Of a stretch of DNA of 64,000 bases, positions 1,021 to 63,379 are shown one piece after another. Position 1 is the stretch's first letter; every line of letters begins with the position of its first letter. Source of the stretch: Haliotis rufescens (lineage: Eukaryota). Position numbers and translations under genes: made by a program. The stretch is from NCBI RefSeq assembly GCF_023055435.1, contig NW_025963835.1, forward strand, positions 34,224,001 through 34,288,000. The letters are read 5' to 3'. The notes under the pieces are model-generated. The model was not told where the DNA came from. It searched no databases and was given only the letters and a program-made list of their open reading frames with translations.

Positions 1021-1730
1021 CACAGAATGGTTTAATATCATGAGCGCATAACGTTACGGTTCAGCGTTCAAACTATTGTGCAGTGTATTTTATTCTCCTG
1101 TTTCTACACTTCTTAGTGGTGGTAAATGACACCAATTGCGCCCTACTGCAAATCCTCAATGTTCAACACCTGTACATGTTTTGTTGATTACTCACATCGA
1201 ATCAATAAAACCACTTCATAGCAGAATAGTGTTAAAGTCGGTTTTATTCTCGTTCGGAGATTCTCATTATGAAGAGTTTATAAGTCTCAACTATCGGAGT
1301 GTGGTCATGTGAGCATAACGTTACGGTTCAGGATTCAAACTATTGTTCAGCGTATTCTATTCTGTTAAAGACAGCGTGGCTTCGTTTAGGAGATGATATG
1401 TGAGTCCGTTCAAAACAGGACGTTTACACACAACATGTCGTGGGCTGCTGAAAGTAATTGTTTTTTCCCCCTTTGATATGATATCGCCCATCTCTAGTGT
1501 ACAGATCCTGTTTTGAAAAGATGAAAATGGATTTATAGTCCTGGACATTTGAAACGGAATCACCGCAGATTATTAATAAATGAAGATAGCTGCATGTGTG
1601 TTGATACTTAGAAAGTGAAAACAAGGCATTCCGACAACAAGGAATATTTTATACAGCAATGATACAAAAACAATCAAAAGTGCGTTTTTTCAAGAAATGT
1701 CCATTTTTCTAGTAACAAACATCACTGTAA

Positions 1731-2140
1731 CATCACCGTCATCTACAGGCACACCGCTGCCATCTGAACGTACAAAACCTTCGTCTACAGGTACAACACT
1801 GTCATCTACTGGTACTACCTCATCATCTACTGGCACAACGCTGTCATGTACCAGGACAACGCCTTCTGTCATCTACTGGCACAACATCGTCATGTACTGG
1901 CACAACGTCGTTTTCTACAGTAACATCACCGTCATGTACAGGTACAACGCTGCCATCTGAACGTACAAAACCTTCGTCTACAGGCACAACGTCGTCATCT
2001 ACAGGTACACGGTCGTCATCAACAGGCACAACATCGTCCTCTGCAGGACCAACGCTTTCTTCTACTGGTACTATAGCTACCATCTCATCTACTAGAACAA
2101 CGAACGAACATCATCACTACCGATACTCGCACACCTGCAT
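1731..2140 (-). pseudogene. 5' part of the repeat-expanded IL-17 pseudogene (3' part deleted)
   Basis: Same ATG region and PVDDD repeats; joined at about 1730 to sequence equivalent to 28315. Confidence 0.75.
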
Positions 2141-6787: not shown

Positions 6788-8177
6788 AGCCGCGTGCATT
6801 GAACACCCACGTGTCTGTCACGTACACATACAGAAGAATGTTACAGGTGGTAACAGATATTTAAATTTTGTCCAATCCCAAAAAGCCGCTCCTCCAGCTC
6901 TCATTTGGTTGAAACATCAACCAGGATACGGGAAGCATACCTTCTCTAAATAGAGGCTTGTGTGGGGGACAATATTTGTTTTCTGAGCAGAACCAAGCAA
7001 TGAGTAGTGTTTCAGTGTGGCATTGACGCTCTTTCGTCACTCACTCACGCACTCACACACGCAGGCACGACATGACATGGCATGACATAACATGATCAAG
7101 TGTCGTGTAGGTGATAAAGGCGTGTTTTTAACCAACGTAGTACATGATAAAGAGGCAGTGGTTGAGATTTATGTTGATCTTTCGCATACTGTCTAATAAC
7201 AAGACTACACACATGTTATATGCCGTGTAATGCTTTTCTTGATGTGAGTTTGTACATGATGTGTTGGCGTGGAATGAAGTGTGGTGTTGGTACAGCGTGT
7301 GCATCGCCTCCTCGGACAGGATCAAGTGTCGGGGCAGTGGAGTGTTTATAACCATCGCAGTCGCTGATAAAAAGGCGGGGTTAAGCGACGGAAGTTAGAC
7401 TAATGTTTATTTGTCGGGTACTGTCTGTCTGTATCCTATTGTCTGCAATTTTTACGGAAATGTTTTAGACATATGACACTGACTAGCTGCCTAACTGACA
7501 TGAATGTTATCGTGGAGATTTTTGAACAGAAGATCTAGGTTTTTGTATCTAACCCTTGAATCAGGGATACGGTATTGTAGAATGCCATCTCTCACCGAAC
7601 AACACTAGTTTGTGAGGTATCTAGGTCATGCGTTACTTTAAGGCATTCATCATTTAACACTCAAACAAATACTGACAACAGCTGTCAAGTGAGATAAGCG
7701 AACGGATCCTTGTTCAATCTGTCGGCAGTGGGACGGAAATATTCCTGTCCGATCAAGATAAATACGCCTTTGCTTTGAATGGAACACAAAAGAGAACACA
7801 ACTATTAGTGAATCATCAAATTTAATGACAATCAAGCAAACAAATAATTCGATGCCGAAAAGTAATTCAAGCCACACATAACAACTGCACTGAGAATACT
7901 CCTATTACAAGACAGTTACAACGTGAACATTGTACACACATATATAAGCATCCTTACTGATTATCAGTCTGGATTTAGGAGTAAATGTTGATGAAAAGAA
8001 ATGACCCATCGTAAATGTATACTGCTATAACAGTCAAGAAGGACAAAGTCTAACATTGTAAGGACCATTAAATTTTTCGGTATTGCTATTGCCGAATATT
8101 GGCTCATGTCACAGTTTGAAGACAGCAAATATTTCAGAGGGACTTCATATGTTAGATTTTCATCTTCATCTTCATCG

Positions 8178-8645
8178 TCAACCACTTGAGGCTCGAGGTG
8201 CAGCACATGTGCACCCAACTGCTACTTCTTTGTCCTCAGGTTGATAGGTGAAGGTACCATTTTCACAGCTGTATTTTAAAACACGGAAGCTAGCTTTCAC
8301 TTGTTCACACTGGTTCTTGTTATTGTTGATACAGTCTCTACAATTACAGCTGGCACTCCGAAGCTGTTGTGGATAAATGTTGTCTCCAAGTCTTAGCGAG
8401 ACGACACTCCAGGGGCAAATGGAACGTTCTCGAGTGGAGTCTTGCATGTTGTTTTGTGACACGGGTGGGTTCGAAGTATCAGGGATGTTGTTCAAGCTGT
8501 TGAAGATCTGTTGTATATGTGATGGTATCTTGCATTGTGTGGCATCCCTTCGTGCTCTCATCATGTTTCCCATATCGTCAGTCACTGGTGTGGCAGTCGC
8601 ATTCATGATGACGACGAGTACGACAGATAACTGTGACAGCTGCAT
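8178..8645 (-). CDS. IL17: Interleukin-17 family cytokine, intronless, 155 aa (type-A flanks)
   Basis: Signal peptide MQLSQLSVVLVVIMNATA, then RSICPW, YPQQL..A.CNC..C, QCEQV...VLK..C and VAVGCTC, which form the IL-17 cystine-knot pattern. Cys replaces the two vertebrate Ser positions, as in invertebrate IL-17s. True ATG taken as 8645 (AACATG context) because the hydrophobic signal peptide starts there and it is the start shared by all copies. Confidence 0.95.
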   Translation of the reverse strand: MQLSQLSVVLVVIMNATATPVTDDMGNMMRARRDATQCKIPSHIQQIFNSLNNIPDTSNPPVSQNNMQDSTRERSICPWSVVSLRLGDNIYPQQLRSASCNCRDCINNNKNQCEQVKASFRVLKYSCENGTFTYQPEDKEVAVGCTCAAPRASSG

Positions 8646-8719
8646 GTTCGTTGACAAAACTTTTGTAATCAACTTAAAATAGTGACTTCTGAGCATCTGT
8701 CAGTCGAGATTTTCTGGTT

Positions 8720-16393: not shown

Positions 16394-17806
16394 TGTTTTT
16401 TCTATTGACCCCGTTGGGACTCCTTGTTAGAATTGCCCCAGCAACCTTGGCTGGTCGTAAGGTGCCACAACATGGACCCGGTGGTCAGACTTAGTTGATA
16501 GGTGTCATAGAACTCTGACAGCGTGGATCATGGTTCAGAATATCAACCACTAGATTGTCTGGGCCAGACGCGACTATTAACAGTGCCCCGTCACATAGCT
16601 GGAATATTGCTGAGTGCGACGTCAGACAACAAACATTGAAGCAAAGACGTCACATATTCGTTGTCCACACAATCACCTGCCATCTGTGACAAAAAGCGAC
16701 TGCAGCGCTGCCACTAACTCAGTCTTAAAGTACGGGAGACTGCTTTACGATACGGAACCCTCGAATATCTTGTTGTCATCATGTAACCTGTGTGGATTCC
16801 AGGTACGAATATAAGTCTTATGAGACTAAGTTCTAAATATACCCGCTTGCAGTAACCAGACTGCCGAACATAGCCCGGATTGTAACCACGAGCTCAAAAC
16901 ACAGTTATGTTTATCAAAATGGATATTTATTTAAACGCGCACTTTGTATTTTTTATCATTACTGTATAAAATATTTCTTGTTGTCGGAATGGCTTGTTTT
17001 CACTTTCTAAGTATTAACACACATGCAGCTATGTTCATTTATTAATAATAGTGATGTGTCGTGATTCGGTTTCAAATGTCCAGGACTGTAAATCTAATTT
17101 ATATTTTCAAAACAGGATCTCCACAGAGCGCCGGATTATAGCATATTAAAGGAAGAAAATACAATGACTTTCAGGAGCCCACAACATGATGTGTGTGAAC
17201 ATCCTGTTTTGAACAGACTCAAAGAAGCCACGCTGTCTCAACATTGAGGATTTGCAGTAGGGTGCAATAGGTGTCATTTACCACCATGAGGGATTGTAGA
17301 AACAGGAGAATAAAATACAATGAACAATTGTTTGAACTCTGAACCGTAACGTTACGCGCTCATGATATTAAGCAAGTATGTGTTCTTCCTCAAACTTACT
17401 TCAGCAATATATGCGCCCTGTTCAAGCAGAGAGTCAAGAAAGAAAACGTGGCAAGCGAGTGTCCTCTTACAACCGGAACAAGCCAGATAGCAAAGAAATA
17501 ACTACCCGTGAATATTTTAAAGATCATCTGACGAAGGTGTAGGAAGGGTAGGAGGAAGGGAAGGGTTTCTGAGATGGAGATGACGAACATTTCACACCCT
17601 GAAATGTATTTCTGCACCCAGACATTTTTAGTCATTCTCAAACTCAACATAGTAGTTTTTGGATTGGACAAAATGTGAATACCCATTTCAGCCCCCGACC
17701 CTTCGTCGTGGCAGTGTATGTTCACACTTGCTATAAAATGAGGTGGTTTGTGATGAGCAGTCAAAACAGAAATTCTCGACTCATTACAAAGGCTTTGTCA
17801 ACGAAC

Positions 17807-18274
17807 ATGCAGCTTTTACAGGTATCCGTCTTGCTCGTCGTCATCATGAAAGCGAATGCCACACCAGTGACTGACGATATGGGAAACATGATGAGAGCAC
17901 AAAGGGATGCCACACAATGCCAGATACCATCACATATACAACAGATCTTCAACAGCTTGAACAACATCCCTGATACGTCGAACTCACCCGTGTCACAAAA
18001 CAACATGCAAGACTCCACTCGAGAACGTTCCATTTGCCCCTGGAGCGTCGTCTCGCTAAGACTTGGAGACAACATTTATCCACAACAGCTTCGTAGTGCC
18101 AGCTGTAATTGTAGAGACTGTATCAACAATACCCAGAACCAGTGTGAACAAGTGAAAGCTAGCTTCCGTGTTTTAAAATACAGCTGTGAAAATGGTACCT
18201 TCACCTATCAACCTGAGGACAAAGAAATAGCAGTTGAGTGCACATGTGCTGCACCTCGAGCCTCAAGTGGTTGA
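17807..18274 (+). CDS. IL17: Interleukin-17 family cytokine, inverted copy, 155 aa (VGCTC to VECTC variant)
   Basis: Same motifs as 8178-8645; TATAAAA at about 17733; only plus-strand copy. Confidence 0.93.
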   Translation: MQLLQVSVLLVVIMKANATPVTDDMGNMMRAQRDATQCQIPSHIQQIFNSLNNIPDTSNSPVSQNNMQDSTRERSICPWSVVSLRLGDNIYPQQLRSASCNCRDCINNTQNQCEQVKASFRVLKYSCENGTFTYQPEDKEIAVECTCAAPRASSG

Positions 18275-23915: not shown

Positions 23916-24383
23916 TCAACCACTTGAAGTTCGAGGTGCAGCACATGTGCAACCAACTGCTACTTCTTTGTCCTCAGGTTGATAGGTGAAGGTACCATTT
24001 TCACAGCTGTATTTCAAAACACGGAAGCTAGCTTTCACTTGTTCACACTGGTTCTGGGTATTGTTGATACAGTCTCTACAATTACAGCTGGCGCTCTGAA
24101 GCTGTTGTGGATAAATGTTGTCTCCAAGTCTTAGCGAGACGAAGCTCCAGGGGCAAATGGAACGTTCTCGAGTGGAATCTTGCATGTTGTTTTGTGACAC
24201 GGGTGAGTTCGACGTATCAGGAATGTTGTTCAAGCTGTTGAAGATCTGTTGTATATGTGATGGTATCTGGCATTGTGTGGCATCCCTTTGTGCTCTCATC
24301 ATGTTTCCCATATCGTCAGTCACTGGTGTGGCATTCGCTTTCATGATGACGACAAGTACGGCAGATAACAGTGACAGCTGCAT
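23916..24383 (-). CDS. IL17: Interleukin-17 family cytokine, 155 aa (type-C flanks)
   Basis: Same motifs, intact ORF; TATA (TTTTATA on +) at about 24476-24482. Confidence 0.95.
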   Translation of the reverse strand: MQLSLLSAVLVVIMKANATPVTDDMGNMMRAQRDATQCQIPSHIQQIFNSLNNIPDTSNSPVSQNNMQDSTRERSICPWSFVSLRLGDNIYPQQLQSASCNCRDCINNTQNQCEQVKASFRVLKYSCENGTFTYQPEDKEVAVGCTCAAPRTSSG

Positions 24384-27160
24384 GTTCGTTGACAAAACCT
24401 TTGTAATCAGCTTGAAATGAGAAGCAGCTCTCAGTTGAGAATATCTGGTTTGACTGTTCATCGTGAAAGACCTCATTTTATAGCATGTCTTCACCTTCAC
24501 TGCCACGTAGAACACACGGGGGCAGAAACAGGTATTCAAATGATGTCCAGTCCCAAAACTATAATGTTGAATTGGTGAATGACTCTAAAAAATGTCTGGG
24601 GGCAGAAATAACTATTCCGGGTGTGAATTGTTCGTCATATCCATCCCAGAAACCATTCTGTACCTCCTACCCTTCCTACACCTTTACATTTGACAGGATG
24701 GTTCATATTAGGGGTATTAGTCTATTTGCTCCCTAGCTTGTTCCGGTTGTAACAGGAGATTGTTTTCGTGTTTTCTTCTTGACTCCCACCTTGAACAGGA
24801 CACATTTATTGTTGGAGTGACTTCAAGGAAGCCCACACTGGTTTGATATGATGATATGGAATTGTTCACAAGCAGAATGCTTTAAATAGTACACAATTTC
24901 GAAAATATGCACCTTCGAAAGACAAAAAGGAAGATTTTTTTTTTACCGTTGCTTACTTGAAATAATTATGCACTGTTGTTAATCTTTAACTCAGGAAATA
25001 TCTTCTTTTGTGTGTGAAATAATTGGTAATTTGACTTAAGTGAAGCATATGAAAATCTTTCGTTTGAATTGATAGTCTGCAGTAGTGAGTTAAATTCTTG
25101 GTAGTAGAAAATGACATGTGCACAAACAATATAAGGTTGCTCTCTCCTGTTATCCTCAATGTTCAACATCTGTACATGTTTTCAAAACCGGATGTTTTTA
25201 CACACATCATATCATAGGCTCCTAAATCACTGTTCCCTTTTCGGCTGACGATATAACATCGAGTTCCCGATTACAGATCTTGCTTTAAAACATATGAGTA
25301 GATTAGTTCTAGGTAATTTCCACATTTTGCTAAGTATTTTCTCACCTTGGCAGAGATTCTTTGTTGTTGATTTTGTCAGAAAATCTATTTGTCTCTAATC
25401 ACAGCTATATTGCCCTTTGTGCACCCGGTGTCAAGAAGTAATGTTGTTGCACTTGACATGGAATCCTCACCTAGGAATGGGATTTCCAAATATTAAAATT
25501 CATTGAACACGAAACAGTGTACATTCTAAAGTTGATTATGTGTAGGATATACAATAAAGATAATGTCAAGCGACTGACAGACACAACAGTTAGGCTGGTT
25601 TCAAATAGAATGAAGCATCGTGAGTGAGTAGTGTTTTACGCCGCTTTAGAGATATTCCAGCAATATCACCGCAGGGGACAGCTTAAAATGGTGGGGAATC
25701 GAACCCAGACTTTCGAAGTGAGGAGCCAATGCTTTAACTGCTAGCCTACCCCACCGCCCCAACGTCGTGACGTAAATCAGTGCAATATACTGAGATATAA
25801 CATGGGATGACACAGTGTCCACAAACGTCCAGTTTGTAAAGTCCCATACATCCGGTTACTGAAACCTGAAAGGTAATCATCATCACATGTTCACAAGTAC
25901 AGAGGCGTATTTACAGAGTTGTTTGTTAGTGCGACCATCGGATCTGCCCTGCGATGTCAGTGGGTTCGGTGTGGTAAGTCCAAGTGTGAACAGGGTCATT
26001 GTGACGTGAGAAACAGATGGTATCGTACCACGATTGGCCAAACAAACAGATGATTTCATTACTCTAAATGAGTGAGTGAGTATGTTTTTACGCCACTTTT
26101 AGCAACATTCCAGCAACAGAAATGGGCTTCACACATTGTATCTATGTGGGGAATCGAACCCGCGTCTTCGGCTTGACGAGGACGCTTTAACCACTAGCCT
26201 ACCCCACCGCCAATTACTTTTAATAAGAATCTGTACAGATACAATTTTTGGTTTGGTTTGTTTGTTTAACGCCGCACTCAGCAATATTCCAGCTATATGA
26301 CGGCGGTCTGTAAATAATCGAGTCTGGACCAGACAATCCAGTGATTGATATCATGAGCATCGATCCACGCAATTGGGATCGATGACCTGCATCTACCCCG
26401 GATCTTCTTGGGCCGTACAGATACATAGTATTAAGTAACTAACACATGCCTCACTTGCTGAATAAGAACAGTGACGTCATTATGAGTGGTAGATAAACCA
26501 TAGTACTCTATAATATAGAATGCTTCTAATAAATTAACACACAATTTATATAAGGAAGAAACTTGATGTCATTGTAGGCTTTTAAATAAATAACAAACCG
26601 TTCGATAAAATATATCCCTCAATACGGCAAATCACTCAATCCGGCAATCCGAGTGATTCACATCATAACATTGTATTAAAAAGGAATGTTTGTTTCATAG
26701 AAACATATATATGAATGGTCAGATGCAGTTGACCTTATGGTTGTGATGCATGATACTATTGTTGTACAGTTCTATATGATGTGTGAGTATAGAATGACGC
26801 GTAGAGTGGGAGTAACGTGTGTGTAACGCGAGTAGTATCCGCATGAGAAATAATTAAGGGTCCGGTCAGTGGTGGGGGCGTGTTTGTGACCCGCCAAGGA
26901 ATTGATAAAGAGGCTAGGGTAAGCGTCGGAGGTGTGGATTAATGTGAACGTGACATACATTGTTTACAGAGGTGTTTTAACATGTAACTGAAACAAGCTG
27001 TCAAACTCATTTGAATGTTATGACGGTAAAGGTATTCTATCTTTAAAGCCCTTCACATCAACAAATGATAGATTCTTCATCACCTTAACGTATTATTCTA
27101 TCTTCAGTAGCAGAACAGGACACGCAATGCCTTGCATGTGTAAACATTGAACGAATTATG

Positions 27161-28755: not shown

Positions 28756-29040
28756 ATAGCTTGCTGTGGACTATTCTGACCAGGAATCCATACCAGGGAC
28801 ACCTTTTACAACAGGTATAGCTTGCTATGGACTATTCTGACCAGGAATCCATACCAGGGACACCTTTTCCAACAGGTATAGCTTGCTGTGGACTATTCTG
28901 ACCAGGAATCCATACCAGGGACACCTTTTACGACAGGTATAGCTTGCTGAAGACTATTCTGACCAGGAATCCATACCAGGGACATCTCTTACGACCGGTA
29001 TAGCTTGTTGGGGGCTATTCTAACTAAGAATCCGCACAGG
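28756..29040. repeat. 61-bp VNTR, about 4.7 units
   Basis: Unit TATAGCTTGCTGTGGACTATTCTGACCAGGAATCCATACCAGGGACACCTCTTACGACCGG. Confidence 0.95.
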
Positions 29041-29564
29041 ATCAATACATAAATTATACGACACAGTAATATAAGACAGAATATGCAGACAGTTAGTAAG
29101 TTATACCAATGTGTTGTAAGGGAGTGACCATTTCATTTTCGTGGTTATTTTCTGTATTTAAAAAAAAACTAGGAACAAGAATATATATATAAACTTATTA
29201 TTAGTGTGTTTTGAAGCAGTGACTGATAAAGTATGATCATGTCTCTAACAAAAAGTGGCTGACCCCTCTAGGTCTCTACCATATTCACAAACAATGTCAG
29301 AACAAGGTGGTACCACATGGATCTAATTCCAATAGCACACGATTTGATAATTAATTGTCAAATATAGCTGACACAAGATGGTAAATGTCTAAACAACTTA
29401 ATAGTTGTCACTGTTCACCAAGCAGCCAGCTGAGTTGTATTCTCCCCAGGGAGCTGAGAATGCAATGTCAATACATACTGATCCATTGACAGGGCACGTT
29501 CTGTGTAGCTGGAATGTATGGATACGATAGACTATGTGTGTGCTATTATTTCTACTGTTGAATA

Positions 29565-30892
29565 TCAACTTGGTGAGATCCGACGTTTTGTGATTGTGCA
29601 ACCTACTGCTAATGGTAAGTCCTTGGGTTGACATATGAAGATACTATTTTCACATCTGGTTTCAAAAATAATCATATAAACTAACAACTGTTAGTTAAAC
29701 TTTGAAGGTGAAGGTTTGATGAATATTTGAAGGTGGTTGACACTGTGTAAGATCATGTTGCCAACGTCGAAATCTACTGGTACAATGTCGTCATCTACAG
29801 GCACAAGACGGTCATTTTCTGGCATAGCGTCGACATCAAGTCGTTCAACACCGTCATCTATAGGCACAACGCTGTCATCTACTGGCACAAACGTCGTCCT
29901 CTATGTAACAGCTCCGTCATTTACAGGTACAACGCTGCCATCTGATGATACCAAGCCTTCATCTACATGCACAACATCGTCCTCTACAGGCACAAAGGTA
30001 TAATCTACTGGAACTATATCTATAACTACCACGTCATCTACTGGTACCATACATATATAACTACCACGTCATCTACTGGTACTATGTATATAACTACCAC
30101 GTCATCTACTGGTACTATATATATAACTACCACGTCATCTACTGGTACTATGTATATAACTACCACGTCATCTACTGGTACTATATATATAACTACCACG
30201 TCATCTACTGGAACAACGCTGTCATATACCAAGACAACGCCTTCTGTCATCTACTGGCACAGCGTCGTCCTCTACAGTAACAGCGCCGTCATCTACAGGC
30301 ACAACGCTGTCATCTGAACGTACAACACCTTCGTCTACAGGCACAACACTGTCATCTACTGGTACTATATATATAACTACCACGTCATCTACTGGTACTA
30401 TATATATAACTACCACGTCATCTACTGGTACTATATATATAACTACCACGTCATCTACTGGAACAACGCTGTCATATACCAAGACAACGCCTTCTGTCAT
30501 CTACAGTAACAGCGCCGTCATCTACAGGCACAACGCTGCCATCTGAACGTACAACACCTTCGTCTACAGGCACAACACTGTCATCTACTGGTACTACCTC
30601 ATCATCTACTGGAACAACGCTGTCATATACCAGGACAACGCCTACTGTCATCTACTGGCACAGCGTCGTCCTCTACAGTAACATCACCGTCATCTACAGG
30701 CACAACGCTGCCATCTGAACGTACAAAACCTTCGTATTCAGGCACAACGTCGTCATCTACAGGTACACGGTCGTCATCAACAGGCACAACATCGTCCTCT
30801 GCGGGACCAACGCTGTCATCTACTGGTACTACCAACTCATCTACTAGAACAACGAACGAACATCAACACTACCGATAATCGCACACCTGCAT
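29565..30892 (-). pseudogene. Diverged IL-17 pseudogene with N-terminal 21-bp repeat expansion
   Basis: Minus strand reads MQV-RLSVVL (cf. MQLSQLSVVL), (PVDDDVV)n, PVDFDVGNMI (cf. PVTDDMGNMM), TQCQPPSNIHQTF (cf. TQCQIPSHIQQIF) and CENSIFICQPKDLPLAVGCTITKRRISPS* (cf. CENGTFTYQPEDKEVAVGCTCAAPRASSG*). It carries frameshifts and internal deletions. Confidence 0.85.
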
Positions 30893-31310
30893 GTTCCTCA
30901 ATAGAACAAGGACATCTAACGCTGCATTGTGTATTTTATAATATTTCAGTGATAAATAATGTTGGGGAATTATAATTGCGTTAAACGTTTCGTTTTACTT
31001 GATAAATGAATTCATGATTGCATGACACTCAGAGAAATATTTTATTGCAATATGCATTTGTACAACTCTGCTTTACATTATCGAATTCTCCACTATCAGA
31101 TGTGATGGTAATTCTTAATGATAGAGTATCAGTGATAATGGCTTTCCTATAACAGTTACATTGTACGTCCTAATGGAGGAGAAATTAGCGTGTGAGTGTG
31201 TCAGTTTTATTCGGTATAACGCCTATTTGAACACTGATAGAGAATTATTTGATCACTGATAGTCCGTGCACAAAGTGCCTTGCATTATTTCCACAGTAAC
31301 TATTTCCTAT

Positions 31311-45783: not shown

Positions 45784-46251
45784 TCAACCACTTGCGGTTC
45801 GAGGTGCAGCACATGTGCACCCAACTGCTACTTCTTTGTCCTCAGGTTGATAGGTGAAGGTACCATTTTCACAGCTGTATTTCAAAACACGGAAGCTAGC
45901 TTTCACTTGTTCACACTGGTTCTTGTTATTGTTGATACAGTCTCTACAATTACAGCTTGCACTCCGAAGCTGTTGTGGATAAATGTTGTCTCCAAGTCTT
46001 AGCGAGACGACACTCCAGGGGCAAATGGAACGTTCTCGAGTGGAGTCTTGCATGTTGTTTTGTGACACGGGTGAGTTCGACGTATCAGGAATGTTGTTCA
46101 AGCTGTTGAAGATCTGTTGTATATGTGATGGTATCTTGCATTGTGTGGCATCCCTTCGTGCTCTCATCATGTTTCCAATATCGTCAGTCACTGGTGTGGC
46201 ATTAGCATTCATAATGACGACAAGTACGACAGATAACAGTGACAGCTGCAT
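45784..46251 (-). CDS. IL17: Interleukin-17 family cytokine, 155 aa (type-C flanks)
   Basis: Same motifs, intact ORF. Confidence 0.95.
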   Translation of the reverse strand: MQLSLLSVVLVVIMNANATPVTDDIGNMMRARRDATQCKIPSHIQQIFNSLNNIPDTSNSPVSQNNMQDSTRERSICPWSVVSLRLGDNIYPQQLRSASCNCRDCINNNKNQCEQVKASFRVLKYSCENGTFTYQPEDKEVAVGCTCAAPRTASG

Positions 46252-49139
46252 GTTCGTTGACAAAACCTTTGTAATCAGCTTGAAATGAGAAGCAGCTCTC
46301 AGTCGAGAATATCTGGTTTGACTGTTCATCGTAAAAGACCTCATTTTATAGCATGTCTTCACCTACACTGCCACGTAGAACACATGGGGGCAGAAACAGG
46401 TATCCAATCCAAAAACTATAATGTTGAATTGGAGAATAACGCTTAAAAATTGTCTGGGGGCAGCAATAACTATTCCGGGTGTGAAATGTTCGTCATATCC
46501 ATCCCAGAAACCATTCTGTACCTCCTACCCTTCCTACACCTTTACATTTGACAGGATGGTTCATGTGGTTTTAAATATATCAATGGGTATTAGTCTATTT
46601 GCTCCCTAGCTTGTTCCGGTTGTAACAGGAGATTGTTTTCGTGTTTTCTTCTTGACTCCCACCTTGAACAGGACACATTTATTGTTGGAGTGACCTCGAG
46701 GAAGCCCACACTGGTTTGATATGATGATATGGAATTGTTCACAAGCAGAATGCTTTAAATAGTACACAATTTCGAAAATATGTACCTTGGAAAGACAAAA
46801 AAGGAAGAATTTTTTTTTACTGTTGCTTACTTAAAATAATTATGCACTGTTGTTAATCTTTAACTCAGGAAATATCTTCTTTTGTGTGTGACATAATTGG
46901 TAATTTGACTTAAGTGAAGCATATGAAAATCTTTCGTTTGAATTGATAGTCTGCAGTAGTGAGTTAAATTCTTGGTTGTAGAAAATGACATGTGCACAAA
47001 CAATATAAGGTTGCTCTCTCCTGTTATCCTCAATGTTCAACATCTGTACATGTTTGTGGATGTGTTAATTTCAAAACCGGATGTTTTTACACACATCATA
47101 TCATAGGCTCCTAAATCACTGTTCCCCCTTCGGCTGACGATATCGATATAACATCGAGTTCCCGATTACAGATCTTGCTTTAAAACATATGAGTAGATTA
47201 GTTCTCGGTAATTTCCACTATATTGCCCTTTGTGCACCCGGTGTCAAGAAGTAATGTTGTTGCACTTGAAATGGAATCCTCACCTAGGAATGGGATTTCC
47301 AAATATTAAAATTCATTGAACACGAAACAGTGTACATTCTAAAGTTGTTTATGTGTAGGATATACCATAAAGATAAAGTGAAGCGATTGACAGACACAAC
47401 AGTTAGGCTGGTTTCAAATAGAATGAAGCATCGTGAGTGAGTAGTGTTTTACGCCGCTTTAGAGATATTCCAGCAATATCACCGCAGGGGACAGTGGAAA
47501 ATGGTGGGGAATCGAACCCAGACTTTCGACGTGAGGAGCCAACGCTTTAACTGCTAGCCTATCCCACCGCCCCACGAAGCGTCGTGGCGCAAATCAGCGC
47601 AAGATACTGAGATATAACATGGGATGACACAGTGTCCACAAACGTCCAGTTTGTAAAGTCCCATACACCCGGTTACTGAAACCTGAAAGGTAATCATCAT
47701 CACATGTTCACAAGTACAGAGGCGTATTTTCAGAGTTGTTTGTTAGTGCGACCATCGGATCTGCCCTGCGATGTCAGTGGGTTCGGTGTGGTAAGTCCAA
47801 GTGTGAACAGGGTCATTGTGACGTGAGAAACAGATGGTATCGTACCACGATTGGCCAAACAAATAGATGATTTTATTACTCTAAATGAGTGAGTGAGTAT
47901 GTTTTTACGCCACTTTTATCAATATTCCAGCAAAAGAAATGGGCTTCACATATTGTTTCCACGCGGGGAATCGAACCCGCGTCTTGGGCGTGACGAGGAC
48001 GCTTTAACCACCAGGCTACCCCAATGCCAATTACTTTTAATAAGTATCTGTACAGATACATTTTTTGGTTTGGTTTGTTTGTTTAACGCCGCACTCAGCA
48101 ATATTCCAGCTATATGACGGCGGTCTGTAAATAATCGAGTCTGGACCAGACAATCCAGTGATTGATATCATGAGCATCGATCACGCAATTGGGATCGATG
48201 ACCTGCATCAACCAAGTCAGCGAGCCTGACCACCCGATCCCGTTAGTCGCCTTTTACGACAAGCATAAGTACCTTTTACGGCAAGCATGGGATGCTGAAG
48301 ACCTATTCTATCCCGGATCTTCTTGGGCCGTACAAATACATAGTATTATGTAACTAACACACGCCTCACCTGCCGAATAAGAACAGTGACGTCATTATGA
48401 GTGGTAGATAAACCATAGTACTCTATAATATAGAATGCTTCTAATAAATTAACACACAATTTATATAATGAGTGAGGAAGAGACTTGATCCCATTGCTGG
48501 CTTTTTAAAAAAATAACAAACCGTTTGATAAAATATATCCCTCAATACGGCAAATCACTCAATCCGGCAATCCGAGTGATTCACATCATAACATTGTATT
48601 AAAAAAGAATGTTTGTTTCATAGAAACATATATATGAATGGTCAGATGCAGTTGACCTTATGGTTGTGATGCATGTTACTATTGTTGTACAATTCTATAT
48701 GATGTGTGAGTATAGAATGACGCGTAGAGTGGGAGTAACGTGTGTGTAACGCGAGTAGTATCCGCATGAGAAATAATTAAGGGTCCGGTCAGTGGTGGGG
48801 GCGTGTTTGTGACCCGCCAAGGAATTGATAAAGAGGCAGGGGTGAGCGTCGGAGGTGTGGATAATTGTGAACGTGATATACATTGTTAGAGAGGTGTTTT
48901 AACATGTAACTGAAACAAGCTGTCAAACTCATTTGAATGTTATGACGGTAAAGGTATTCTATCTTTAAAGCCCTTGACATCAACAAATAATATATTCTTC
49001 AACACCTTAACGTATTATTCTATCTTCAGTAGCAGAACAGGACACACAATGCCTTGCATGTGTAAACATTGAACGAATTATGTCATGTTTACGGATATGT
49101 TTTGAACGTGTAATGCCTATATGAACTCTAATGCAATAC

Positions 49140-50725: not shown

Positions 50726-51560
50726 ATAGCTTGCTGTGGACTATTCTGACCAGGAATCCATACCAGGGACATCTCTTACGACTGGTTTAGTTTGCTGTGG
50801 ACTATTCTGACCAAGAATCCATACCAGGGACACCTCTTATGACCGGTATAGCTTGCTGGGGGCTATTCTAACCAGGAATCCATTCCAGGGACACATCTTA
50901 CGACCGGTATAGCTTGCTGTGGACTATTCTGACCAGGAATCCATACCAGGGACACCTCTTACGACAGGTATAGCTTGTTGGGGACTATTCTGACCAGGAA
51001 TCCATACCAGGGACACCTCTTACGACCGGTATAGCTTGCTGTGGACTATTTTGACCAGGAATCTATACCAGGGACACCTCTTACGACCGGTATAGTTTGC
51101 TGTGGACTATTCTGACCAGGAATCCATACCAGGGACATCTCTTATGACCGGTATAGCTTGTTGGGGACTATTCTGACCAGGAATCCATACCAGGGTCACC
51201 TCTTACGACCGGTAAATCTTGTTGTGGGCTATTCTGACCAGGAATCCATACCAGGGACACCTCTTACGACCGGTAAATCTTGTTGGGGGCTATTCTGACC
51301 AGGAATCCATACCAGGGACACCTCTTACGACTGGTATAGTTTGCTGTGGACTATTCTGACCAGAAATCCATACCAGGGACACCTCTTACGACCGGTAAAT
51401 CTTGTTGGGGGCTATTCTGACCAGGAATCCATACCAGGGACACCTCTTACGACCGGTAAATCTTGTTGGGGGCTATTCTGACCAGGAATCCATACCAGGG
51501 ACATCTCTTACGACCGGTATATCTTGTTGGGGGCTATTCTAACCAAGAACCCGCACAGTA
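50726..51560. repeat. 61-bp VNTR, about 13.7 units
   Basis: Same unit as 28756-29040. Confidence 0.95.
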
Positions 51561-52076: not shown

Positions 52077-53300
52077 TCAACTTGGTGAGATCCGACGTTT
52101 TGTGATTGTGCAACCTACCGCTAATGGTAAGTCCTTGGGTTGACATATGAAGATACTATTTTCACATCTGGTTTCAAAAATAATCATATAAACTAACAAC
52201 TGTTAGTTAAACTTTGAAGGTGAAGGTTTGGTATATATTTGAAGGTGGTTGACACTGTGTAAGATCACATTGCCAACGTCGAAATCTACTGGTATAATGT
52301 TGTCATCTACAGGCACAAGACGGTCATCTTCTGGCATAACGTCGTCATCAAGTCGTACACCACCGTCATCTATAGGCCCCAAGCTGTCATCTACTGGCAC
52401 AAACGTCGTCCTCTATGTAACAGCTCCGTCATCTACAGGCACAACGCTGCCATCTGATGATAAAAAGCCCTCATCTACATGCACAACATCGTCCTTTACA
52501 GGCACAAAGGTATAATCTACTGGTACTATATATTTTGCTACCTCTTCATCTACTGGAACAACGCTGTCATATACCAAGACAGCGCCTTCTGTCATCTACT
52601 GGCACAGGGTCGTCCTCTATAGTAACATCACCGTCATCTACATGCATAACGCTGCCATCTGAACGTACAAAACCTTCGTCTACAGGCACAACACTGTCAT
52701 CTACTGGTACTACCTCATCATCTACTGGAACAACATCGTCATCTACTGGCAGAACATCGTCATGTACTGGCACAACATCGTCATCTACTGGCACAACATT
52801 AATGTACTGGCACAACGTCGTCCTCTACTGGCACAACATCGTCATGTACTGGCACAACGTCGTCATCTACTGGCACAACATCGTCATGTACTGGCACAAC
52901 ATCGTCATCTACTGGCACAACATCGTCATGTACTAACACAACGTCGTCCTCTACAGTAACATCACCGTCATGTACAGGTACAACGCTGTCATCTGAACGT
53001 ACAAAACCTTCGTCTACTGGAACAACGCTGTCATATACCAAGACAACACCTTCTGTCATCTACTGGCACAGCGTCGTCCTCTATAGTAACATCACCGTCA
53101 TCTACAGGCACAACGCTGTCATCTGAACGTACAAAACCTTCGTCTACAGGCACAACGTCGTCATCTACAGGTACACTGTCGTCATCAACAGGCACAACAT
53201 CGTCCTCTGCAGGACCAATGCTGTCATCTACTGGTACTACCAACTCATCTACTGTAACAACGAACGAACAATAACGCTACCGATAATCGCACACCTGCAT
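52077..53300 (-). pseudogene. Second copy of the repeat-expanded IL-17 pseudogene
   Basis: Colinear with 29565-30892. Confidence 0.85.
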
Positions 53301-60115: not shown

Positions 60116-62837
60116 GAGACTTGTCATTCTATGGCGGAGACGTTTGATATTTATAATGTTAATACCTCTGACAATATTAGATCAAAGAGCAAACACAGCA
60201 GACACAATATAACTTACAATATCCTCTTTGTGGAAGTGTAAAATCTCTATCCAATCTGAAACCAGAACTTCCAGAACCGACAGTTGCAAAACACGATATA
60301 AGTACAGCTATTGGGACAGGTGTCATCTACGATTGATTGCTTAGTTTGATTGACATCATGAGCATTATCTACACGGACAGGACACGATGACAAGCATCAA
60401 CCAAGTCAGCGAGCCTGACCACCCGACCAATTCTAATCCGGATCTTCTCAGGTATCAACTACGGTTGAGTGTATTACACTAGGTTTCAGTGTTAACGAAT
60501 TAGTTATATTACCCCGTTTTTCCTTAACAATTCATGTGTGACAAAACCCTTTCCATATTCATAAGAAATCTCTGATAAAAGCAGTGTACGATTCGGACAA
60601 TATCATGAATGGGGAACAAGCTGACACATCGTAAATATATTCTGATATAACATTCAAGTAGAAGTCTGACAGTGTTGCAGTTGTCAAATATTGTCTCAAT
60701 GCACAGTTCGTAGACAGCAGGCTAATTCAGGATGTTCTGGACCACCAATAACAATTAAAGGTCCAGAGTAAAGGGTTTCATATTTCAGTCTGATGCATAT
60801 TGTATACCACTGTATATAATGCTGTTTTGAAATGTGTGTCAACTATTTGATAAATCCGGGAATACGAAACACCTCCGTAAAATAATGATGACAAGAGTCA
60901 ATTATGTCAAGATGGTTCAGATATCGTGGATAAAAAGGGGAAAATATGAAACCCACTTTTTACATTTATAATAAGTCTAATTATAGGCACAGACCCTGAT
61001 ATGTGCTGCTCTTTTGATATTGACTTGTCGCTACGCAGATCCATGTTCTCTCCCACGGTGTTTTCCTGATGGATTCGGAACACACCCACTTTGCCGTAAT
61101 TTACAAGAATCGCATCCCATGAAAACTACAAAGCGATTCGGATCATGTCTGATTTTAGTGTCAGAACATTTTGAAAGCCTTTATGAGAGTAAATCTGAAT
61201 AAAACTGAAAATACATAATTCTTTTCATGAAGACTAATCCTGTGTTGTCAAGGGTAATTAGTGCATATTCCCAGCCGCGTGGGGGCGGTCGGGTAGCCTA
61301 GTGGTTAAAGCGTTCGCTCGTCACGCTGAAGACCCGGGTTCGATTCCCGACATGGGTACAATGTGTGAAGCCCATTTCTGGTGTCCCCGCCGTAATACTG
61401 ATCGAATATTGCTAAAAGCGGTGTAAAACCATACTCACTCACTCACAGCCGCGTGCATTGAACACCCACGTGTCTGTCACGTACACATACAGAAGAATGT
61501 TACAGGTGGTAACAGATATTTAAATTTTGTCCAATCCCAAAAAGCCGCTCCTCCAGCTCTCATTTGGTTGAAACATCAACCAGGATAAGGGAAGCATACC
61601 TTCTCCAAATAGAGGCTTGTGTGGGGGACAATATTTGTTTTCTGAGCAGAACCAAGCAATGAGTAGTGTTTCAGTGTGGCATTGACGCTCTTTCGTCACT
61701 CACTCACGCACTCACACACGCAGGCACGACATGACATGGCATGACATAACATGATCAATTAAGTGTCGTGTAGGTGATAAAGGCGTGTTTTTAACCAAAG
61801 TAGTACATGATAAAGAGGCAGTGGTTGAGATTTATGTTGATCTTTCGCATACTGTCTAATAAGACTACACACATGTTATATGCCGTGTAATGCTTTTCTT
61901 GATGTGAGTTTCTACATGATGTGTTGGCTAGGAATGAAGTGTGGTGTTGGTACAGCGTGTGCATCGCCTCCTCGGACAGGATCAAGTGTCGGGGCAGTGG
62001 AGTGTTTATAACCATCGCAGTCGCTGATAAAAAGGCGGGGTTAAGCGACGGAAGTTAGACTAATGTTTATTTGTCGGGTACTGTCTGTCTGTATCCTATT
62101 GTCTGCAATTTTTACGGAAATGTTTTAGACATATGACACTGACTAGCTGTCAAACTGACATGAATGTTATCGTGGAGATTTTTGAACAGAAGATCTAGGT
62201 TTTTGTATCTAACCCTTGAATCAGGGATACGGTATTGTAGAATGCCATCTCTCACCGAACAACACTAGTTTGTGAGGTATCTAGGTCATGCGTTACTTTA
62301 AGGCATTCATCATTTAACACTCAAACAAATACTGACAACAGCTGTCAAGTGAGATAAGCGAACGGATCCTTGTTCAATCTGTCGGCAGTGGGACGGAAAT
62401 ATTCCTGTCCGATCAAGATAAATACGCCTTTGCTTTGAATTGAACACAAAAGAGAACACAACTATTTGTGAATCATCAAATTTAATGACAATCAAGCAAA
62501 CAAATAATTCGATGCCGAAAAGTAATTCAAGCCACACATAACAACTGCACTGAGAATACTCCTATTATAAGACAGTTACAACGTGAACATTGTACACACA
62601 TATATAAGCATCCTTACTGATTATCAGTCTGGATTTAGGAGTAAATGTTGATGCAAAGAAATGACCCATCGTAAATGTATACTGCTATAACAGTCAAGAA
62701 GGACAAAGTCTAACATTGTAAGGACCATTAAATTTTTCGGTATTGCTATTGCCGAATATTGGCTCACGTCACAGTTTGAAGACAGCAAATATTTCAGAGG
62801 GACTTCATATGTTAGATTTTCATCTTCATCTTCATCG

Positions 62838-63305
62838 TCAACCACTTGAGGCTCGAGGTGCAGCACATGTGCACCCAACTGCTACTTCTTTGTCCTCAGG
62901 TTGATAGGTGAAGGTACCATTTTCACAGCTGTATTTTAAAACACGGAAGCTAGCTTTCACTTGTTCACACTGGTTCTTGTTATTGTTGATACAGTCTCTA
63001 CAATTACAGCTGGCACTCCGAAGCTGTTGTGGATAAATGTTGTCTCCAAGTCTTAGCGAGACGACACTCCAGGGGCAAATGGAACGTTCTCGAGTGGAGT
63101 CTTGCATGTTCTTTTGTGACACGGGTGAGTTCGAAGTATCAGGGATGTTGTTCAAGCTGTTGAAGATCTGTTGTATATGTGATGGTATCTTGCATTGCGT
63201 GGCATCCCTTCGTGCTCTCATCATGTTTCCCATATCGTCAGTCACTGGTGTGGCAGTCGCATTCATGATGACGACGAGTACGACAGATAACTGTGACAGC
63301 TGCAT
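62838..63305 (-). CDS. IL17: Interleukin-17 family cytokine, 155 aa (type-A flanks)
   Basis: Same motifs; near-identical to 8178-8645. Confidence 0.95.
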   Translation of the reverse strand: MQLSQLSVVLVVIMNATATPVTDDMGNMMRARRDATQCKIPSHIQQIFNSLNNIPDTSNSPVSQKNMQDSTRERSICPWSVVSLRLGDNIYPQQLRSASCNCRDCINNNKNQCEQVKASFRVLKYSCENGTFTYQPEDKEVAVGCTCAAPRASSG

Positions 63306-63379
63306 GTTCGTTGACAAAACTTTTGTAATCAACTTAAAATAGTGACTTCTGAGCATCTGTCAGTCGAGATTTTCTGGTG

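Follow-up and report, generated by a model that had tools for sequence, protein, structure and literature searches.

The question raised by this locus (29565-30892, minus strand) is whether a 21-bp tandem repeat of about 1 kb only happens to lie beside short IL-17-like strings or forms part of a former IL-17 gene, and, in the latter case, whether the repeat grew while that gene was still coding. The window is the whole stretch of DNA analysed, 64,000 nucleotides from Haliotis rufescens. IL-17 (Pfam PF06083) is tandemly expanded in marine molluscs (PMC8353272), and in the H. rufescens genome (1.33 Gb) at least 48 loci scored above the Pfam IL17 cut-off, many of them clustered on the same contig at 34.09-34.64 Mb. 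The window itself holds five intact single-exon IL-17 ORFs scoring 39-46 bits each, a truncated copy, and several 5' fragments:

8178-8696, minus strand, intact IL-17 ORF (Pfam IL17)
17675-18274, plus strand, intact IL-17 ORF (Pfam IL17)
23916-24539, minus strand, intact IL-17 ORF (Pfam IL17)
45784-46362, minus strand, intact IL-17 ORF (Pfam IL17)
62838-63356, minus strand, intact IL-17 ORF (Pfam IL17)
32177-31746, minus strand, truncated IL-17 copy, running into a 16-bp satellite

Self-comparison showed a satellite-rich architecture of ~22-kb segmental duplicates. On the opposite strand, beside two of the intact genes, weak profile matches were seen at 7829-7957 (+) and 62489-62617 (+) (E 0.12-0.44, profile positions 149-177), which may be another small relic or chance.

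Within the locus, five features follow one another on the minus strand, in the order of an IL-17 coding sequence:

30868..30900, minus strand, start block with Kozak-like GAAC, ATG and signal-peptide remains
~29762..30835, minus strand, 21-bp minisatellite (PVDDxVV) with higher-order repeats of ~130 and ~250 bp
29751..29780, minus strand, last repeat unit grading into unique pro-segment (PVDFDVGNMI against PVTDDMGNMM)
29710..29748, minus strand, TQCQPPSNIHQTF block, matching TQC[KQ]IPSHIQQIF of the intact genes
29565..29687, minus strand, C-terminal IL-17 block (last two strands), with the stop codon at 29565-29567

A profile of 13 Haliotis IL-17 paralogs was searched against all 3273 stop-to-stop open pieces of the window, and ranked the real genes highest, followed by the C-terminal pieces of the relic (E 2.8e-6, profile positions 170-202) and then its TQC pieces (E 0.009 and 0.03, profile positions 64-85), in colinear order. 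By DNA alignment, the C-terminal block was 74-78% identical to the intact genes over 74 nt (E 2e-11), with the local subfamily nearest (75-78%, vs 70% for the next subfamily). By tblastn, residues 139-170 of the intact protein matched 29669..29574 and 52181..52086 at 44% identity (E 3e-4), and residues 47-65 matched 29766..29710 at 53-63% identity over 19 aa. The last 29 aa aligned colinearly and without indels, 14 of 29 residues being identical (counted from the alignment), and the stop codon stands at the family position, as in the intact genes. Divergent paralogs from other parts of the genome equalled or surpassed the local genes in their protein-level match to the C-terminal block, with identities reaching 52% over 31 aa in one alignment and 42% over 38 aa in another.

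Support for the remaining blocks was obtained by shuffling. The start block GAACATGCAG, with its ATG at 30892-30890, aligned to the intact 5' end with a local score of 13, against a shuffle mean of 7.3 (13 was reached by 2 of 2000 shuffles), and the score of the junction block (PVDFDVGNMI plus TQCQPPSNIHQTF, 29780-29710) was reached by 1 of 2000, giving p ~1e-3 for each at its expected place. The signal-peptide block taken by itself was not significant (tblastn E 6), Pfam IL17 detected none of the open pieces of the relic, and the promoter and 3' flank had no detectable homology to the intact loci. All four blocks are thus present in order, and the shuffles, profile, DNA alignment and stop position place the TQC and C-terminal blocks clearly beyond chance. 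Significant colinear similarity in both DNA and protein shows that 29565-30892 (minus strand) descends from an IL-17 gene of the local H. rufescens subfamily. This bears out the first-pass annotation, which had seen four homologous blocks in order, a 29-aa C-terminus colinear with the intact genes without indels and with the same stop, and an anonymous 21-bp repeat lying inside IL-17-derived minus-strand sequence.

The relic is broken throughout its length. At the 5' end, the LSVVL codons are no longer in frame with the ATG because of a 1-nt deletion, the ATG frame meets TAG and TGA stops 7-10 codons downstream, and the register of the 21-bp array changes at least five times. Of the DNA alignments at the junction, the one already proposed (PVDFDVGNMI against PVTDDMGNMM) is the better; a 16-nt deletion after the last repeat unit then takes out the convertase-type RARRDA site and causes a frameshift, and a TAA stop lies four codons after the TQCQPPSNIHQTF block. 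The cystine-knot core is absent, corresponding to about residues 66-138 of the 172-aa ORF (~73 codons) and including the CPW motif, so that the TQC and C-terminal blocks lie just ~22-40 nt apart, and the C-terminal block no longer has the second Cys of its C-T-C motif. None of the relic's open pieces reached the Pfam gathering score for IL17 (the intact neighbours score 39-46 bits), the core with its conserved cysteines is gone, and no uninterrupted frame with a signal peptide is left. Region 29565-30892 is therefore a non-functional IL-17 relic, without coding function. What it has in common with invertebrate IL-17 (PF06083) is the TQC block, the two final strands, the position of the stop and a location in a tandem cluster; it differs in having no cystine-knot core, intact signal peptide or open frame, and in that a 1-kb minisatellite replaces a pro-segment of ~14 residues.

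Two other resemblances to IL-17 were considered and rejected. The ORF at 29398-29634 (IFNSRNN...TCPVNGS...) matched the missing middle at E 0.13 and was non-colinear and not recurring, and part of it, 29430-29494, is a dispersed repeat. The other was a satellite with a CPWYY-like reading:

28756-29033 and 50726-51549, 61-bp satellite (CPWYGFLVRI in the minus-strand reading)

Its resemblance to CPWYY was at chance level (protein E 0.05-0.15; DNA E 2). The dispersed repeat at 29430-29494 is of very high copy, with contig depth in the thousands in each run examined, including the runs guessed to be RNA.

Two further copies of the relic lie in the window:

52077..53300, minus strand, copy 3, segmental duplicate of the whole relic (array 52275-53243)
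1690..2140, minus strand, copy 1, start block and first part of the array only (array 1720-2083)

Copy 3 is 97% identical to the relic described above (copy 2) in the unique 3' blocks and carries the same lesions with other repeat counts. Copy 1 has a ~2.6-kb deletion relative to copy 3, with the breakpoint in the PVDD array at 1720-1727. The earlier statement that all three copies are broken therefore stands, by frameshifts, stops and deletions. In a sister species, 29400-30011 is covered by a DNA contig that shows 19 substitutions and is free of gaps, and one 229-bp block of the array is missing from sister-species contig DNA. Since both deletions, that of the core and that of 16 nt, and the C-terminal block also occur in the sister species, they predate the species split. 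To that extent the earlier description of the relic as ancient is correct; the term is relative, the nearest DNA relatives being members of the local subfamily.

With a unit inside the 10-100 bp range and a changing copy number, the array is a minisatellite. Tandem Repeats Finder (TRF) reported periods of 21, 33, 130 and 250 bp, and the consensus unit reads PVDDGVV. The higher-order block (~130 nt) consists of six unit types, PVDDSVV, PVDEGVV, RSDGSVV, PVDDGAV, TVEDDAV and PVDDRRR, of which five are exactly 21 nt, and which diverge from one another by ~20-30%. The unit matches the 21 nt encoding PVTDDMG in the intact genes at ~13 of 21 positions (manual count). At one edge of the array, the first units follow the signal-peptide remnant, and at the other the last unit runs directly into unique GNM sequence. 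DNA and protein searches of the whole genome (1.33 Gb) found the array in only three places, all in this window. Because it is confined to this locus, the array is not an inserted dispersed satellite and grew in place from pro-segment coding sequence, an origin which the first-pass annotation had also proposed and which the ~13/21 match, the GNM continuity and the locus restriction support.

Relative to minisatellites with higher-order structure known in genes and pseudogenes, the array is alike in its 21-bp unit, its amplified multi-unit blocks, its internal deletion breakpoint, and a copy number that differs between paralogous copies and between species. It is unlike them in that its seed can be traced to a named cytokine coding segment, and in that the same segment has expanded independently in a living paralog.

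The array does not preserve a reading frame. Each minus-strand frame contains 19-37 stops per kb, and the PVDD register in copy 2 rotates 2>0>1>2>1. The plus strand is the more open one: its three frames have 3-9 stops each, and uninterrupted stretches there reach 171 codons. In the consensus unit, stops occur in both of the remaining minus frames and in no plus frame, so the seeming preference for the PVDD frame reflects the unit itself. These counts do not confirm the claim of a largely open IL-17 frame.

The timing of growth was read from lesions copied within the array. In the PVDDRRR unit, a 4-nt insertion breaks the frame and leads to a stop (PVDDRRRC..GI-stop). Copy 2 contains three examples of the ~130-nt block with this insertion, and copies 1 and 3 have it too; the block length is not divisible by 3. 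Younger sub-arrays lie in and beside the same interval:

30243..30648, minus strand, interval with three 4-nt insertions (near 30646, 30495 and 30245), one per higher-order repeat
30003-30211 and 30351-30461, minus strand, young 33-bp sub-arrays (VPVDDVVVIYI units), 93-100% identical and largely specific to copy 2

Since the insertion was copied together with its block, the block was amplified after the frame had been lost, and most of the growth took place after gene death. The 33-bp sub-array is very young, as judged from its 93-100% identity, and unit counts differ among copies 1-3. The bulk of the ~1-kb array was thus added in a non-coding state, and the proposal that expansion began while the gene was coding is not supported for most of the array, given the amplified insertion, the young sub-array and the 229-bp block difference. 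A brief coding phase at the outset, with a few in-frame units, is compatible with three observations: five of the six unit types are exactly 21 nt, an intact repeat-bearing paralog shows that a gene can tolerate in-frame growth of this pro-segment, and variability in the PVDD register is slightly higher at third codon positions (1.05-1.08 bits vs 0.83-0.95). The last comparison is a weak test, and an intact control array had no third-position excess.

A living counterpart of the array was sought in proteins, RNA and the literature. An 86-aa open piece of the array, searched against 1.84 billion representative proteins, gave 211 matches at E 0.001, and no IL-17 domain joined to PVDD-like repeats was found among the best 150 of these 211; the best match was an unrelated 533-aa protein with VVPVEDT heptads. 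Loci L013, L014 and L015 of the H. rufescens genome (G000:C101:25.48 Mb, C57:6.95 Mb and C457:2.26 Mb) hold open frames of 307-375 aa with Val/Asp/Glu-rich repeats, which resemble the 533-aa heptad protein and match the array only weakly. The PVDD-like matches, these three loci included, were rejected as counterparts, being unrelated repeat proteins without an IL-17 domain. When a local 172-aa IL-17 served as the query for homologous proteins, the window's own protein was the sole match. As a pro-protein with in-frame repeats and a conserved ORF, the relic is broken in both H. rufescens and the sister species. None of the runs listed as containing the stretch is on record as RNA; in the assembled contigs of a few runs, two of them RNA by guess, one guessed-RNA H. 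rufescens run covered only the dispersed repeat at 29430-29494, and the second gave low-depth pieces indistinguishable from DNA. A targeted search of the open literature found no repeat-bearing IL-17 pro-segments, and a survey of IL-17 evolution that treats the tandem gene expansion in marine molluscs describes none (PMC8353272).

An intact IL-17 gene with a repeated pro-segment was found ~74 kb from the relic, in the same cluster, within the locus G000:C57:34177950-34181171 (L039):

L039:745-1740 = G000:C57:34178694-34179689, plus strand, 331-aa IL-17 ORF, LOC124151871 (43.7 bits, Pfam IL17)

In this ORF, which NCBI annotates as 'uncharacterized protein', a hydrophobic leader is followed by 11.5 copies of a 39-bp unit and then by a complete IL-17 domain. 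Its 13-aa units are in frame, with 0% indels and the consensus DS[LV]MD[FV]GNAMTRR, and the unit corresponds to nearly the whole pro-segment of the local genes (TDDMGNMMRARR), dibasic site included. The H. cracherodii ortholog is 95% identical (multiple alignment) and has three units fewer, a relative in H. rubra has just ~2-3 unit-like segments, and no pro-segment repeats were found in seven further IL-17 loci. LOC124151871 resembles the relic in belonging to the same cluster and a related subfamily, in having its repeat between the signal peptide and the first Cys, and in a repeat number that varies between species. The two differ in unit, a 39-nt whole-pro-segment unit with an RR site vs a 21-nt unit from the PVTDDMG half, and in state, an indel-free array in an open ORF vs a frame-broken one. 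A repeat-bearing IL-17 architecture therefore exists alive with a different unit. The architecture that the first-pass annotation did not recognise accordingly has a similar, though not identical, intact representative, and LOC124151871 and the relic together show that the same short pro-segment was expanded twice, with different units, one alive and one dead.

In most of the abalone IL-17 subfamilies, the first Cys is preceded, 3-4 residues upstream, by an RxRR or RR motif:

8178-8696 and 23916-24539 of the window (minus strand) and other IL-17 ORFs, R-x-R-R/RR motif
L027, L038, L044, L046 and L050, further loci with the R-x-R-R/RR motif

From its sequence, the motif suggests a convertase site, at which the pro-segment would be cleaved.

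The most probable history, in our view, is that of a dead IL-17 relic of the local subfamily, whose pro-segment seeded a minisatellite that grew mostly after gene death. We consider it unlikely that the heptad array was substantially expanded in a functional gene, a secreted IL-17 with a long Asp/Val-rich pro-segment that later died and whose array then drifted. That history would account for a unit of exactly seven codons, array edges in frame with both IL-17 flanks, few indels in the unit types, and the weak third-position excess in variability, and it has a living analog in LOC124151871, with 11.5 in-frame 13-aa repeats conserved in H. cracherodii. However, the edges of any array of 21-nt units would be in frame, coding or not, the third-position test is weak and its signal is absent from the intact control, and the amplified ~130-nt block carries a 4-nt insertion that breaks the frame in each of its copies. 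No single frame is open and the opposite strand is more so, no intact ortholog or paralog of the array was found in genome searches or among the best 150 of 211 library matches, and the sister species has the same lesions.

That an unrelated minisatellite lies by chance beside short IL-17-like strings is very improbable. Pfam IL17 is silent on all pieces and the signal-peptide block reaches only E 6, as chance resemblance would predict, but this reading is effectively refuted by the DNA match of the C-terminus (E 2e-11) and the 13-paralog profile (E 2.8e-6), with the same stop position, and it also has to contend with three further colinear blocks (each p ~1e-3 or E ~0.01) and with the placement of the locus inside an IL-17 gene cluster. 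It is extremely improbable that the array should be read on the plus strand, as a mucin-like exon rich in Ser and Thr (TTSSTGT). The 3-9 stops per array, and ORFs of up to 159 aa with an ATG (52457-52936) and of 116 aa (29967-30317), give this reading its appeal; the openness is, however, automatic, as the consensus unit is stop-free in every plus frame, the ORFs differ between copies, no RNA contigs were found in the few runs covered (two RNA by guess), and the flanks are IL-17 pieces on the opposite strand.

Under the preferred history of a pro-segment-seeded minisatellite grown mostly after gene death, the 21-nt PVTDDMG segment just after the signal peptide would have duplicated in tandem, forming the seed, and the gene would then have lost its reading frame, the convertase-type RARR site and the whole cystine-knot core. 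The array would afterwards have expanded to ~1 kb and kept changing, probably by replication slippage and unequal crossing-over of multi-unit blocks, which are ordinary minisatellite mechanisms. Later, the whole relic would have been carried along in the surrounding 22-kb segmental duplication and copied three times. We infer both this order, a few units first, then gene death, then bulk growth, and the slippage and crossover mechanism.

We regard as doubtful the stronger proposal that the relic is the dead remnant of a secreted IL-17 whose acidic heptad pro-segment had started to expand under selection. If it were true, this innovation would have arisen recurrently in abalones, the relic being an independent second instance and LOC124151871 the living example, in which the whole pro-segment and its dibasic site are repeated 8-11x, and a precursor of this type could release many copies of a short peptide in addition to the cytokine.

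As a pseudogene, the relic is ordinary, and its traceable satellite origin together with the intact repeat-bearing neighbour is of modest interest. It provides a clean case in which the seed of a minisatellite is traceable to a coding segment that can be named, and illustrates the continual reshaping of a fast-evolving immune gene cluster by tandem repeats and deletions. Any effect it has today would come from its instability within a cluster that is rearranging, one deletion having its breakpoint inside the array. The more useful by-product is LOC124151871, which raises the question of whether mollusc IL-17s are pro-proteins cut at a conserved RxRR, and whether the repeated pro-peptides may have a role of their own.
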